Part shown: positions 13,767-16,522 of the stretch, one piece after another
Position numbering within the stretch: the stretch's first letter is position 1
Layout of the letters: the number at the start of each line of letters is the position of its first letter
Sequence record: NC_010821.1
Strand: one strand, 5' to 3'
DNA length: 64,000 nucleotides
Notes under the pieces: model-generated
The model's input: only the letters and a program-made list of their open reading frames with translations
Databases searched by the model: none
Told to the model about the DNA's origin: nothing
Made by a program: the position numbers and the translations under genes

Positions 13767-13793
13767 ACATAAAGCCCCTCCTGAAGGAGGGGC
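13767..13793 (+). terminator. stem-loop GCCCCTCC/GGAGGGGC
   Basis: ACATAAA flank plus 8-bp stem right after the stop; no T tract. Confidence 0.7.
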
Positions 13794-13808: not shown

Positions 13809-14141
13809 ATGATGATCAAATTTAATCTTGCTGACAAAACTACCCTAGCTGGCCGTGAGGCTGTTGTTTATGAAGCTTTCGTAAAAGCACTTCGTGACAC
13901 TACGCTGTCTCGGGCCGGATTGGCTACAGCGATCCATCAGTCTCACCCGGCGATCAAAAACGTCTCACTGGTGGCGCTTAAAGGCGATGGTCCTAACAGT
14001 AGTACACTCCGTGCTAAGTTCTACGATGGTAGTACCGCAACTTTCCATTACACTACCTATACCACTGAAGAAATGAACGTACCAGACAAATGGTCCGCGC
14101 GAGTATCGGCTGGTCCAGATGGTGCCGTTACACTGCATTAA
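13809..14141 (+). CDS. hypothetical protein (110 aa)
   Basis: GAGGA RBS; bounded by two hairpins. Confidence 0.75.
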   Translation: MMIKFNLADKTTLAGREAVVYEAFVKALRDTTLSRAGLATAIHQSHPAIKNVSLVALKGDGPNSSTLRAKFYDGSTATFHYTTYTTEEMNVPDKWSARVSAGPDGAVTLH

Positions 14142-14147
14142 TCCTAG

Positions 14148-14173
14148 TGCCCTCCTTCGGGAGGGCATTATGT
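14148..14173 (+). terminator. stem-loop TGCCCTCC-TTCG-GGAGGGCA
   Basis: 8-bp stem, cUUCGg loop, TTATGT flank. Confidence 0.8.
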
Positions 14174-14185
14174 CATTAAAAGCTT

Positions 14186-14202
14186 TTTAAAGAGTATATT
14201 AC
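14186..14202 (+). promoter_or_regulatory. early promoter (TATATTAC)
   Basis: Exact phiKZ early-promoter core TATATTAC with upstream TTTTTAA, just before an RBS (GAGGTG). Confidence 0.7.
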
Positions 14203-14212
14203 AGAGGTGTAT

Positions 14213-14650
14213 ATGGAAGCAACCTTGACGATCACACGTGAAGGATCGATGTATGCTGATTTTCTGATGGACTCAGCTCCAGTTGGATTTGAAGACTGTT
14301 TAGAAAAATCAGAACTACTGCGCCGACTCCATTGGGGTCAGGCTTTTGCTGAACTTGGTGAACCGATCACCGATAATCTAATTGGTGACCCAGTAGCTAC
14401 ACTTCGTAGAATACATTGTCTTGAAGAGCGAAATATATGCGCCCATGTTACAATGCGTGTCATGGATCTATCAGGCGATCACCTACGAGCGTTCTTTAAA
14501 CCATACGGTCCAATGGCTGATAAACTCCGTGGACTCTGGCTAACCAATCCAACTGGGTTGAAAGCTAAGTTCCGTTACATCCAAGCTAATAATGATGAAG
14601 GCGATTTAACCGTCACCAACATCTATGGCATCGACGTCATTCAAAATTAA
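14213..14650 (+). CDS. head-maturation-protease-fold paralogue, predicted inactive
   Basis: SELLRRL..AELGEP, RRI..LEERNICAHV, FKPYGP, AKFRY, NIYGIDV mirror the gp175-type motifs as I recall them, but His->Glu and Ser->Lys. Confidence 0.65.
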   Translation: MEATLTITREGSMYADFLMDSAPVGFEDCLEKSELLRRLHWGQAFAELGEPITDNLIGDPVATLRRIHCLEERNICAHVTMRVMDLSGDHLRAFFKPYGPMADKLRGLWLTNPTGLKAKFRYIQANNDEGDLTVTNIYGIDVIQN

Positions 14651-14669
14651 CCAATAGGAAATTACCCCA

Positions 14670-15344
14670 ATGCGTATTGACAATACTAAAGTAGAAAGCT
14701 TCAAAAACTGGTTCTTTGGTCGTCCGAATATTAATTTCGATGACCTTGATGATCAGGCATTCAACGAGTTGTCGATCCATGTTGCAGCTGAGAGCGATCT
14801 GCCGAAAGAAGCAGACCCCGAGGCTAAATACTACGTCGAGGCAACTGGTGATACCTATCGCTTCGTCGATGGGGCTTATCAAGTAATAGATGTTTACAGT
14901 TTCGGTGTAACCCAAGCTTACCGTGACGCACCACGTCGCGTGTACGCCCGTGAGACCATTGTGGACCATTCCCATGGCATTCCATCGATCACCGCTGAAC
15001 AGATCCGTAACGGCGCTCCAGCCGGTTTGGCGACACTCTACAACATCCAAGCGTTGTTGATGGATCTTGAACAGATCCGTCGTATTGATGTTTACGGGTA
15101 TAAAACGACCTTGATGGATGTTTTGAGTCAGGGGGCTTATTCCACCAAAGAACAAAACGTTACACACTGGTTCTCCACTCAACACACTCTGTTGTATCGC
15201 CTGCTGGCGTCCAGCATGCGTGCAAAAGACGCGTTCAACAAATCTGTAATCGATGCTCTGTTCAAACACAACTACGTACTGACTTGGGACGATGCTAAAA
15301 ATCGCCCAGTCTTTAAAGTGGATGACTTCATCGTTTATCTGTGA
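14670..15344 (+). CDS. hypothetical protein (224 aa)
   Basis: AGGA RBS, phage-typical codon usage; no recognisable motif. Confidence 0.8.
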   Translation: MRIDNTKVESFKNWFFGRPNINFDDLDDQAFNELSIHVAAESDLPKEADPEAKYYVEATGDTYRFVDGAYQVIDVYSFGVTQAYRDAPRRVYARETIVDHSHGIPSITAEQIRNGAPAGLATLYNIQALLMDLEQIRRIDVYGYKTTLMDVLSQGAYSTKEQNVTHWFSTQHTLLYRLLASSMRAKDAFNKSVIDALFKHNYVLTWDDAKNRPVFKVDDFIVYL

Positions 15345-15351
15345 GGTGGTT

Positions 15352-15630
15352 ATGCGACTTAAAATCTTGGCTGTGTTATCGGTTGTACTATTGGCTGGCT
15401 GCAATAAGGAACCGGATCAAGTCATTGGTACACTGATGGCATCACGTTGTGATGTAGAGTGTGGTGTCGTCATTAACTCGAAAGGCATTGCCAATGATGA
15501 TGTTCTACGTGAGTTCAAAACCTGCGGTGGGGACAATAAAGATCTGATAGGTCGTAAGGTGATTGCCTTCAAGCAGAATCTCGTTCACGGTGAAACCTGT
15601 ATGACAGTATACGAATACCTACAACGCTAA
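15352..15630 (+). CDS. predicted lipoprotein
   Basis: MRLKILAVLSVVLLAG-C lipobox; GAGGTGG RBS; four additional Cys. Confidence 0.8.
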   Translation: MRLKILAVLSVVLLAGCNKEPDQVIGTLMASRCDVECGVVINSKGIANDDVLREFKTCGGDNKDLIGRKVIAFKQNLVHGETCMTVYEYLQR

Positions 15631-15639
15631 AGGTGCGAG

Positions 15640-16089
15640 ATGATTACGCTTGAAACTACAACATCGTTCGTACCTGCCTTCTCTGCGTTACCATTCATCA
15701 AATCTTTAAATCAGTACTATCCCGATATTGAATACTGGTATGTGAATAAAGTCATACCAGGCCTCACGTTAGGTAATGATAAGCTCATTGTCGCACGTGA
15801 TGAACACTTCAATATTGCTGGTATTGCTTTGGGTAAGTTGAGTGACGCTGAAGCGAAGTTGCGTTGTGTTCGTGTACACCCGGATCATCAGAATAGTGGT
15901 CTGGGTATTCGCCTGATCGACAACATGCTTGAGTTGATCGGCGAACGTAAACCTGGGGTGACTGTATCGGAAGAGATGATCAACCTTTACAGTCGTGCCT
16001 TCGTTAAACGCTATGGCTTTGAATTGTCCGACGTAACCAAAGGACGTTATCGCCGTGGCAAACTTGAATATGGATTCAATGGAGCGTAA
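15640..16089 (+). CDS. GNAT-family N-acetyltransferase
   Basis: Acetyl-CoA motif A: VRVHPDHQNSGLG; C-terminal F..RYGF. Confidence 0.85.
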   Translation: MITLETTTSFVPAFSALPFIKSLNQYYPDIEYWYVNKVIPGLTLGNDKLIVARDEHFNIAGIALGKLSDAEAKLRCVRVHPDHQNSGLGIRLIDNMLELIGERKPGVTVSEEMINLYSRAFVKRYGFELSDVTKGRYRRGKLEYGFNGA

Positions 16090-16467
16090 ATGGAATACCT
16101 GATCGACCTCTCGAAGAAAACGTCAGCATATCGTGAAGCATTGCTACGTTATCTGACTGGTGGCAAATACCAGAAAATCGGTTGCTATATGGAGTACCGC
16201 CACCCAACCAAACTTCGCAGCGAATCCCTAGATGACTTCATCCAGCGATACCATCAAACCGATGATCGAAACTGGTGTGCACGTGCCACTGACATCACAG
16301 TGGTTGGTGATGAGCTGGTGATCACGGTCACTCCTTTTGGGGTATGGAAAGATAGCGTTGATTTTGATGAACGTTGGCCTTCTGCGCGCATCATCCAGTT
16401 CAATGGTGAGGTTAAGGAAATCGTTGGGTTTGACTTGATCCTAAAGGCGAACCATAACGATTTCTAA
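16090..16467 (+). CDS. miniature head-maturation-protease-fold protein, catalytic His/Ser retained
   Basis: MEYRHP, F..RY...DDRNWCAR, VTPFG, PSAR, IVGFDLI align with gp175-type GELGHP / FSIR / IVTFD motifs. Confidence 0.6.
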   Translation: MEYLIDLSKKTSAYREALLRYLTGGKYQKIGCYMEYRHPTKLRSESLDDFIQRYHQTDDRNWCARATDITVVGDELVITVTPFGVWKDSVDFDERWPSARIIQFNGEVKEIVGFDLILKANHNDF

Positions 16468-16470
16468 GTA

Positions 16471-16522
16471 GACGACATAAAGCCAGCTCCTTCGGGAGCT
16501 GGCATATGCTGTTATTTTTTTT
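16471..16522. terminator. bidirectional terminator
   Basis: GCCAGCTCC-TTCG-GGAGCTGGC plus T tract, between convergent genes. Confidence 0.85.

Follow-up and report, generated by a model that had tools for sequence, protein, structure and literature searches.

Pseudomonas phage 201phi2-1 gp206-gp210: a predicted early operon assembled as a mosaic around a constant gene pair

We analysed a 64,000-nucleotide stretch of Pseudomonas phage 201phi2-1 (Serwervirus; EU197055 / NC_010821) that covers genome bases 124001-188000 and is called the window here (genome coordinate = window coordinate + 124000). Within it, the five consecutive genes gp206-gp210 probably form a polycistronic early operon, which occupies a variable accessory-gene slot of a conserved backbone. 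These genes encode, in order, a truncated prohead protease paralogue, a member of the phiKZ gp125 family, a predicted lipoprotein, a GNAT-fold N-acetyltransferase and a second, shorter protease paralogue (Table 1). An initial annotation of the same DNA had taken this combination of protein cleavage, acetylation and an envelope lipoprotein to suggest a co-regulated host-takeover or counter-defence module. However, only gp206 and gp207 are constant across relatives, and the idea that the five genes act as one system did not hold up.

According to the explanation that we favour, the injected virion RNA polymerase would, shortly after the DNA has entered the cell, recognise the promoter of TATATTAC type at 14175-14202, read through the five closely spaced genes and stop at the two-way hairpin at 16482-16503. 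The products would then act separately and not as a single machine, with gp206 and gp207 as a stable core onto which different lineages may have added, or from which they may have lost, single genes.

Gene content of the interval in related phages

The interval between the gp204 and gp211 homologues was compared in nine cultured phages and in metagenomic contigs with close gp206/gp207 homologues; within the Serwervirus-like clade, gp204 is 59-76% identical. The interval contains a single gene in phiKZ (gp125), two genes in Noxifer, four in each of PhiPA3, PS119XW, Psa21, and RVTF4, and six in Phabio, in agreement with the initial description of the unit as accessory. Orthologues of gp206 and gp207 are present and adjacent in all 11 Serwervirus-like relatives, separated by 13-19 nt from stop to start. 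The other genes vary: the lipoprotein gene is found in five of ten relatives (once downstream of the GNAT gene), the GNAT gene is intact in eight of ten (of the other two, one has a remnant and one lacks it), none of nine complete intervals contains gp210, and unrelated small genes occupy the last position in two relatives. At least five architectures are seen among 11 Serwervirus-like genomes, and of the 10 genomes whose interval is complete, 201phi2-1 alone has the five-gene set. The remaining interval genes of Psa21, RVTF4, PhiPA3, PS119XW, and Phabio have no PHROG match.

Co-occurrence of the five genes in phiKZ, PhiPA3 and their relatives had been proposed as a check on the five-gene system, with independent assortment as the outcome that would speak against it. 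From their distribution, the GNAT, lipoprotein and gp210 genes do assort independently, and phiKZ has only the gp207 homologue. In the metagenomic contig ERR13731090_390365 (L015), which represents a close relative, the gp207 homologue is followed by a short N-terminal GNAT remnant with one deletion-type break and then by an unrelated open reading frame (ORF) of 69 amino acids; this remnant is direct evidence that a gene has been lost from the slot.

A dedicated system that couples cleavage and acetylation with an envelope lipoprotein would find support in the shared promoter and terminator, the early class of that promoter, the tight spacing of the genes that the initial annotation had noted (gaps of 19, 7, 9, and 0 nt across about 2.3 kb) and the non-virion nature of the products. 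However, gp208, gp209, and gp210 are each missing from several close relatives that keep the promoter together with gp206-gp207, and the GNAT and gp210-like genes occur alone at other loci (the gp210-like genes of Viktualia and Phabio, for instance, lie outside the interval). In addition, gp206 appears to be catalytically dead, the gp210 subfamily does not conserve the catalytic triad, and searches of PADLOC (anti-phage defence profiles) gave no meaningful match, only a chance-level hit of 10.8 bits. The five-gene system is largely refuted by this distribution, and we give it hardly any credence. For putative early non-virion genes as such, a host-takeover or counter-defence role is plausible.

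Promoter and terminators

The initial annotation had the unit opened by a terminator plus promoter and closed by a bidirectional terminator, and the sequence agrees on both counts. The hairpin that precedes the promoter has a z-score of -4.7, and none of 200 shuffled sequences folded as well. The octamer TATATTAC (14195-14202) has its sole copy in the window here, but it is not enriched (one copy versus 2.2 expected, with at least one copy in 91 of 100 shuffles), and its count, which is uninformative alone, was rejected as statistical evidence. Support for the promoter comes from the extended motif. The 17-mer TTTAAAGNGTATATTAC has a mismatch-free match at the gp206 promoter site only, and the roughly 28 nt that end in TATATTAC are nearly identical to a site 5' of gp262 in the same phage. 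The site shows the phiKZ-type early promoter feature, an AT-rich element ending in TATATTAC, and it agrees with the 201phi2-1 promoter consensus (PMC7058600, Table 2). It also matches the account of 201phi2-1 early promoters, with their conserved -10, -20, and -30 regions, in a study by ONT-cappable-seq that pooled its time points (PMC11512511).

The arrangement of hairpin, TTATG, AT-rich stretch and TATATTAC recurs at five other sites in 201phi2-1, phiKZ, Psa21, RVTF4, and Viktualia, and stands 5' of gp121 in phiKZ and of the corresponding genes in Psa21 and RVTF4. In the Serwervirus-like relatives, TATATTAC, or TATATCAC in two of them, stands 5' of the gp206 orthologue in 11 of 11 cases and the preceding hairpin is kept in 10 of 11; this motif was retained while the gp206 orthologues themselves drifted to 33-75% amino acid identity.

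At the other end of the unit, the core of the closing hairpin folds strongly on both strands (z = -5.2 on the plus and -6.1 on the minus strand), with a T-run on the plus side and a canonical TTTATG tail on the minus side. All relatives examined have an equivalent convergent hairpin, and the phiKZ supplement maps a minus-strand transcript end (T058) at the orthologous hairpin; a transcript start 5' of gp125 was not found in that supplement. The promoter and terminator of gp206-gp210 are predictions from these sequence features.

The gp206-gp207 pair

The gp207 protein belongs to PHROG 14839, the phiKZ gp125 / PhiPA3 gp144 family, whose members are encoded at the same genome position in Viktualia, Phabio, PhiPA3, PS119XW, phiKZ, Psa21, and RVTF4. 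By its position, this family anchors the interval in every phiKZ-related Pseudomonas phage examined apart from Noxifer, in whose interval a gp207 homologue was not detected. We weighed the possibility that gp206 and gp207 constitute a two-gene module, for example a peptide-binding decoy or adaptor (the short dead S80 paralogue) and an effector (its gp125-family partner), with the other genes as passengers. The constant adjacency of the pair in Serwervirus-like relatives speaks for it, as does the presence of a short S80-like gene directly 5' of the gp207 homologue in Phabio, PhiPA3 and PS119XW (two tandem copies in each of the last two). Invariant Glu, Pro, Arg, and Asp residues in the short paralogues, despite lost catalysis, also point to a selected non-catalytic surface. 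However, no short S80 paralogue was detected beside the gp125-family gene or its slot in phiKZ, Psa21, RVTF4, and Noxifer, short paralogues are also found away from gp125-family genes, and gp207 does not resemble the C-terminal part that the truncated protease lacks (hhalign probability 0.4%). A partnership between gp206 and gp207 is best treated as a putative interaction, and the two-gene module as a tentative possibility that we do not favour over the accessory operon of separately acting products.

Several candidates were tried for these genes and rejected. Given the low hhalign probability, we rejected gp207 as a detached C-terminal part of the protease, an idea previously raised for SPN3US gp117/gp118 (PMC5694885). 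A profile match of gp207 to a microcephalin BRCT domain was weak and not significant (E = 0.012). Psa21 gp178 turned out not to be a short S80 paralogue. A gp207-like gene beside the GNAT gene in Erwinia phage AH06 and Ralstonia phage RSF1 was also discarded; the upstream neighbours of about 200 amino acids are unlike gp207 and unlike each other.

NCBIfam and PADLOC gave no useful match for gp207. Its AF2 model is poor (mean predicted local distance difference test score, pLDDT, 65.6, and below 50 in the N-terminal half), and a structural search with this model found no PDB match better than E = 0.28. The PhiPA3 homologue gp144 (L005, 5857-6528) was among the top 25 RecA-miniTurboID proteins in the phage nucleus in one of three trials (PMC10643120). 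In transposon sequencing (TnSeq) of phiKZ, gp125 tolerates insertions and is dispensable under laboratory conditions, whereas insertions in gp123, gp124, and gp128 are absent from the selected library. The TnSeq tables also list insertions in the virion protein genes gp126 and gp127 of phiKZ (L007, 8923-10247), as for gp125.

Two truncated prohead protease paralogues

Both gp206 (E = 4e-40) and gp210 match PHROG 7478 strongly. Against PF20034 (Peptidase S80), gp206 scores 15.3 bits and gp210 26.9 bits versus a gathering cut-off of 23.4, and both matches span only profile positions of about 51-106 of 229. By BLASTP, they match the true prohead protease of 201phi2-1, gp268 (E = 1e-7 for gp206 and 3e-5 for gp210), and both align to its residues 58-205 or so. 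They are thus homologous to the catalytic core of the MEROPS S80 / PF20034 prohead proteases (phiKZ gp175, 201phi2-1 gp268, SPN3US gp245) and share with these the positions of the E-x-x-H-P, K-P-x-G-P, S-x-R, and D motifs. However, they are only about half as long (145 and 125 versus 280 amino acids), are undetected in virions, and lie behind an early-type promoter and not among late genes.

To place the triad, both proteins were aligned with gp268, phiKZ gp175 and the OBP, Kwan, and SPFM16 proteases. The SPFM16 protease has H77, S153, and D178 at three invariant columns, exactly as published for the catalytic triad of SPN3US gp245 (PMC5694885), and the corresponding residues of gp268 are H90/S176/D199. 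At these columns gp206 has E50/K119/D141, its orthologues likewise having Glu, Lys, and Asp, so that gp206 is predicted to be catalytically inactive, as the label of a dead protease in the initial annotation had it. Because the catalytic His and Ser are both lost, gp206 is most likely a protease-fold binding module and not an enzyme.

The same columns in gp210 are occupied by H38/S98/D115 (alignments A2 and A5 and hhalign), and at the level of residues the description of gp210 as a mini-protease agrees with its sequence. The assignment of Ser98 is backed by alignment with the nearest relatives of gp210 and by profile-profile alignment, the R-I-I-Q-F-N stretch of gp210 corresponding to R-Y-I-Q-A-N of gp206; a 52-sequence alignment, in contrast, puts D93 at the Ser column. 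The gp206 protein ends just after the Asp column, and gp210 additionally lacks about 55 N-terminal residues (alignments A2 and A5). Neither protein has a complete catalytic domain or the C-terminal prohead-targeting region of about 80 residues, and nothing indicates virion or prohead association or late expression, the GenBank record carrying no mass-spectrometry note on either and the upstream promoter being of the early type. NCBIfam and PADLOC gave no useful match for either protein. The label "head maturation protease" that RefSeq gives to gp206 and gp210, which came via PHROG 7478, is an over-annotation. Although the two protease-fold genes do bracket the unit in 201phi2-1, as the initial annotation had remarked, this pattern is specific to 201phi2-1 and is not found in relatives.

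It is possible that gp210 is still active. A more specific proposal would be that it is an active minimal serine protease working with the adjacent GNAT, acetylation marking a host protein for cleavage, as has been reported for Rac of phiKMV-like phages (PMC7824862). In favour of this proposal, Rac provides a precedent, the triad residues align with those of S80 proteases, the gp210 start codon follows immediately after the gp209 stop codon, and the AF2 model suggests a confident fold (pLDDT 88.7) with Ser98 and Asp115 in strands. However, gp210 lacks the entire C-terminal region as well as the N-terminal residues mentioned above, in its nearest relatives His is replaced by Tyr, Asn, or Arg and Ser may be replaced by Ala or Gly, and one large alignment places Asp93 at the Ser column. 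Furthermore, the best PDB match of the model, the T4 gp21 capsid protease, is weak (E = 0.07; template modelling (TM) score 0.41-0.44), the GNAT gene is without a gp210-like neighbour in all other phages examined, and gp209 has no detectable similarity to proteins of phiKMV-like phages. We regard this protease-acetyltransferase scheme as very doubtful.

It might also be that gp206 and gp210 are merely decaying duplicates of the prohead protease gene without a function of their own. Truncation and loss of catalytic residues would fit, such genes have been called truncated and presumably inactive (PMC5694885), and gp210 is an orphan in a word-indexed search of 5.8 billion proteins. However, neither reading frame is disrupted, all relatives have kept a gp206 orthologue downstream of a conserved promoter despite sequence divergence, the family has invariant columns and confident predicted folds, and several paralogues per genome are kept in many jumbo phages. 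Decay without function is therefore improbable, if slightly less so than the scheme with Rac-like marking.

The short S80-like family

Among 1.84 billion representative proteins, a profile search retrieved 51 relatives at E <= 0.001, and the resulting 52-sequence alignment comprises 35 short entries (<200 amino acids; gp206, gp210 and 33 others) and 17 full-length proteins. The Asp and the S-x-R Arg are present in all 35 short entries. Only seven have His and three have Ser at the catalytic columns, 17 having Gly in place of Ser, and the full triad is seen in none of the short entries versus 14 of the 17 full-length proteases. The short family as a whole is predicted to be non-catalytic, with gp210 as the exception, which alone among the short members examined shows all three triad letters (alignments A2 and A5); its nearest relatives have Ala, Gly, or Ser at the Ser column. 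Matches of the gp210 model in BFVD include gp206, short proteins of Phabio (three), Psa21, RAY and others, and full-length prohead proteases. Searched by sequence against solved structures, the short S80 profile gave nothing meaningful.

Ali et al. (2017) described diverged, truncated prohead protease paralogues as "cryptic" and presumably inactive, and named 201phi2-1 gp206 and PhiPA3 gp143 among them (PMC5694885). With SPN3US gp117, Kwan gp144 and PhiPA3 gp143, gp206 shares family, truncation and presumed inactivity, whereas gp210, which is not named among the cryptic proteases of that study, belongs to a shorter subfamily.

The nearest relatives of gp210, Viktualia CDS0053 (L023, 3501-3911) and Phabio gp342 (L024, 3501-3887), are encoded in another genome region, where they adjoin genes for ribose-phosphate pyrophosphokinase (PRPP synthetase) and nicotinamide phosphoribosyltransferase (NAD salvage); the Viktualia gene also adjoins a tRNA-splicing ligase gene.

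A bolder idea is that short S80-like proteins form a distinct, widespread early pseudoprotease class of nucleus-forming jumbo phages, namely peptide-binding modules derived from a capsid-maturation enzyme and typically paired with gp125-family proteins. Within this class, gp210 would be a rare member with a kept or regained His-Ser-Asp centre that cleaves host or phage proteins early in infection, possibly with the adjacent acetyltransferase. We consider this unlikely, though somewhat less so than decay without function.

The lipoprotein and the acetyltransferase

As the initial annotation had recognised, gp208 has the features of a bacterial lipoprotein, a signal peptide ending in LLAGC and a lipobox (LAGC) with the predicted lipidated Cys17 (numbered from the translation). 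The lipobox Cys and four further Cys columns are invariant in six of six members of an otherwise fast-evolving family, and gp208 is predicted to be a disulphide-bonded envelope lipoprotein. Profile matches are weak and confined to the signal peptide (LPAM_1, 12.6 bits versus a cut-off of 20; TrbK, residues 4-22 only), and no relative of the mature domain with its four conserved Cys was detectable outside Serwervirus-like phages. T5 Llp and Cor are phage exclusion lipoproteins. Like these and the TrbK entry-exclusion protein, gp208 is small, predicted to be early and provided with a classical lipobox, but its likeness to TrbK does not extend beyond the signal peptide. It would most likely have a role at the cell surface, for example in receptor blocking or in excluding other phages.

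The GNAT assignment of gp209 is likewise well founded, with three Pfam models above their cut-offs (Acetyltransf_7, 32.2 versus 27 bits; FR47, 30.3 versus 22.1; Acetyltransf_1, 27.7 versus 20.7), membership in PHROG 13728 and an intact acetyl-CoA loop (QNSGLG; consensus Q/R-x-x-G-x-G/A). AcrVA5 is a phage GNAT acetyltransferase, and gp209 has the same fold. Other phage GNATs include the RimI-like GNATs of group-1 jumbo phages and Rac (PMC7824862). RimI is the weak best match of gp209, which scores 30.1 bits against the RimI NCBIfam equivalog, far under the cut-off of 86.4. Sequence searches found no solved structure for gp209 at E <= 0.01.

Identity of gp209 is 78-87% within the Serwervirus-like relatives and still 43-73% in jumbo phages of Erwinia, Kosakonia, Proteus, Ralstonia, Burkholderia, and Sinorhizobium, where the gene lies at other loci among unrelated genes. 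The closest of these is a protein of Erwinia phage AH06 (73%; L025, 4001-4444), followed by those of Kosakonia, Proteus, Ralstonia (RSF1; L026, 4001-4435), and Burkholderia phages (56-66%); neighbours of the GNAT gene differ in every genome. For comparison, gp268 shares only about 28-36% identity with the prohead proteases of such phages. Because the identity of the GNAT far exceeds that of the prohead proteases, the gene has either been exchanged among jumbo phages or been unusually constrained. The target of gp209 is likely a host protein, possibly of the translation or transcription machinery.

Genomic surroundings and gp205

The studied region is 100% identical to 201phi2-1 genome bases 137700-140600. 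The stretch singled out by the initial annotation (13809-16522) takes in gp205-gp210, all on the plus strand; gp206-gp210 do belong to the unit, whereas gp205 lies upstream of the promoter and outside it (Table 1). No paralogues of any of these six genes were found elsewhere within the window. The position of the cassette inside a conserved core was confirmed. On the upstream side lie the major capsid protein gene, gp201-202, the non-virion RNA polymerase (nvRNAP) subunit gene gp203 and gp204, the homologue of phiKZ gp124. Downstream, on the opposite strand, are the virion structural protein genes gp211-213 (homologues of phiKZ gp126-128) and then gp214, the homologue of phiKZ gp129, which was named portal in the phiKZ TnSeq preprint. 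The nvRNAP block named as one flank of the unit is thus present, whereas the "baseplate" genes named as the other are annotated only as virion structural proteins. GenBank carries mass-spectrometry virion notes on gp211-gp215 and gp268 and none on gp205-gp210.

Table 1. Positions in the window of the genes and regulatory elements of the studied region
Feature	Position	Strand	Remarks
G+C-rich hairpin between gp204 and gp205	13774-13793		-18.5 kcal/mol, z = -3.5
gp205, 109 aa, orphan small protein	13812-14141	+	Outside early-promoter unit
Intrinsic-terminator-type hairpin, ATTATG tail	14145-14170	+	Predicted to close upstream transcript; -19.8 kcal/mol
Predicted early-class (virion RNA polymerase type) promoter, AT-rich, ends in TATATTAC	14175-14202	+	Motif
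Ribosome-binding site AGAGG	14203-14207	+	Directly after TATATTAC
gp206, 145 aa, truncated S80 prohead protease paralogue, predicted catalytically dead	14213-14650	+	PHROG 7478, triad columns
gp207, 224 aa, phiKZ gp125 family	14670-15344	+	PHROG 14839
gp208, 92 aa, predicted lipoprotein precursor	15352-15630	+	Lipobox LAGC
gp209, 149 aa, GNAT-fold N-acetyltransferase, distantly RimI-like	15640-16089	+	Pfam GNAT models, PHROG 13728
gp210, 125 aa, second, shorter S80-like paralogue	16090-16467	+	PF20034, PHROG 7478
Two-way intrinsic terminator, core stem 16482-16503	16471-16521		Common to operon and convergent gp211

The gp205 gene sits between two hairpins, has no match in Pfam, PHROG, NCBIfam, or PADLOC, and has homologues only in Serwervirus-like relatives (27-44% identity), most of which carry two tandem copies (about 76 and 106 amino acids) where 201phi2-1 has one. 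Its start lies only about 15 nt from the upstream hairpin, which leaves no room for a promoter of its own, and gp205 is therefore probably transcribed by read-through from gp204. That hairpin has a canonical TTTATG tail on the minus strand only and no T-run on the plus strand, although the 2.7 kb upstream of it contain no minus-strand gene. It may be an antisense transcript stop, or a relic of a two-way terminator such as those at the corresponding place in Phabio and phiKZ.

The gp204 homologue of PhiPA3 (gp140/gp141; L005, 2697-4803) matches in two pieces with one break, and the record annotates a short forward gene and a long antisense ORF there; this is probably a frameshift or a sequencing or annotation problem.

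Implications

Several points weigh against the interpretation of gp206-gp210 as an accessory early operon whose products act separately. Independent assortment is compatible with cooperation where the genes coexist, the lipoprotein and GNAT genes recur together in five relatives, and the gp209 stop and gp210 start codons abut. Retention of all three triad letters in gp210 would be unexpected under a purely non-catalytic reading. Early timing and a single transcript are predicted from motifs, PMC11512511 reports the early motif at only six mapped transcript starts of 201phi2-1, and the roles of all five proteins are predictions.

Most elements of the locus, including gp206 as a cryptic protease, are already present in the literature or in annotation. 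New here are a second paralogue with a complete triad (gp210), the apparent loss of catalysis throughout the short family, whose Asp and Arg are invariant, the presence/absence matrix of the interval and the unusual conservation of the GNAT. The RefSeq labels can be corrected accordingly, gp206 and gp210 being truncated, non-virion paralogues of the prohead protease, of which gp206 appears inactive. What looked like a neat five-part system is a mosaic around a two-gene core, a caution for predictions from guilt by association in jumbo phages. The locus also offers three leads, namely a putative pseudoprotease family whose non-catalytic signature is invariant, a GNAT whose conservation across jumbo phages far exceeds that of their core genes, and a fast-evolving, predicted disulphide-bonded lipoprotein that may be made early in infection.

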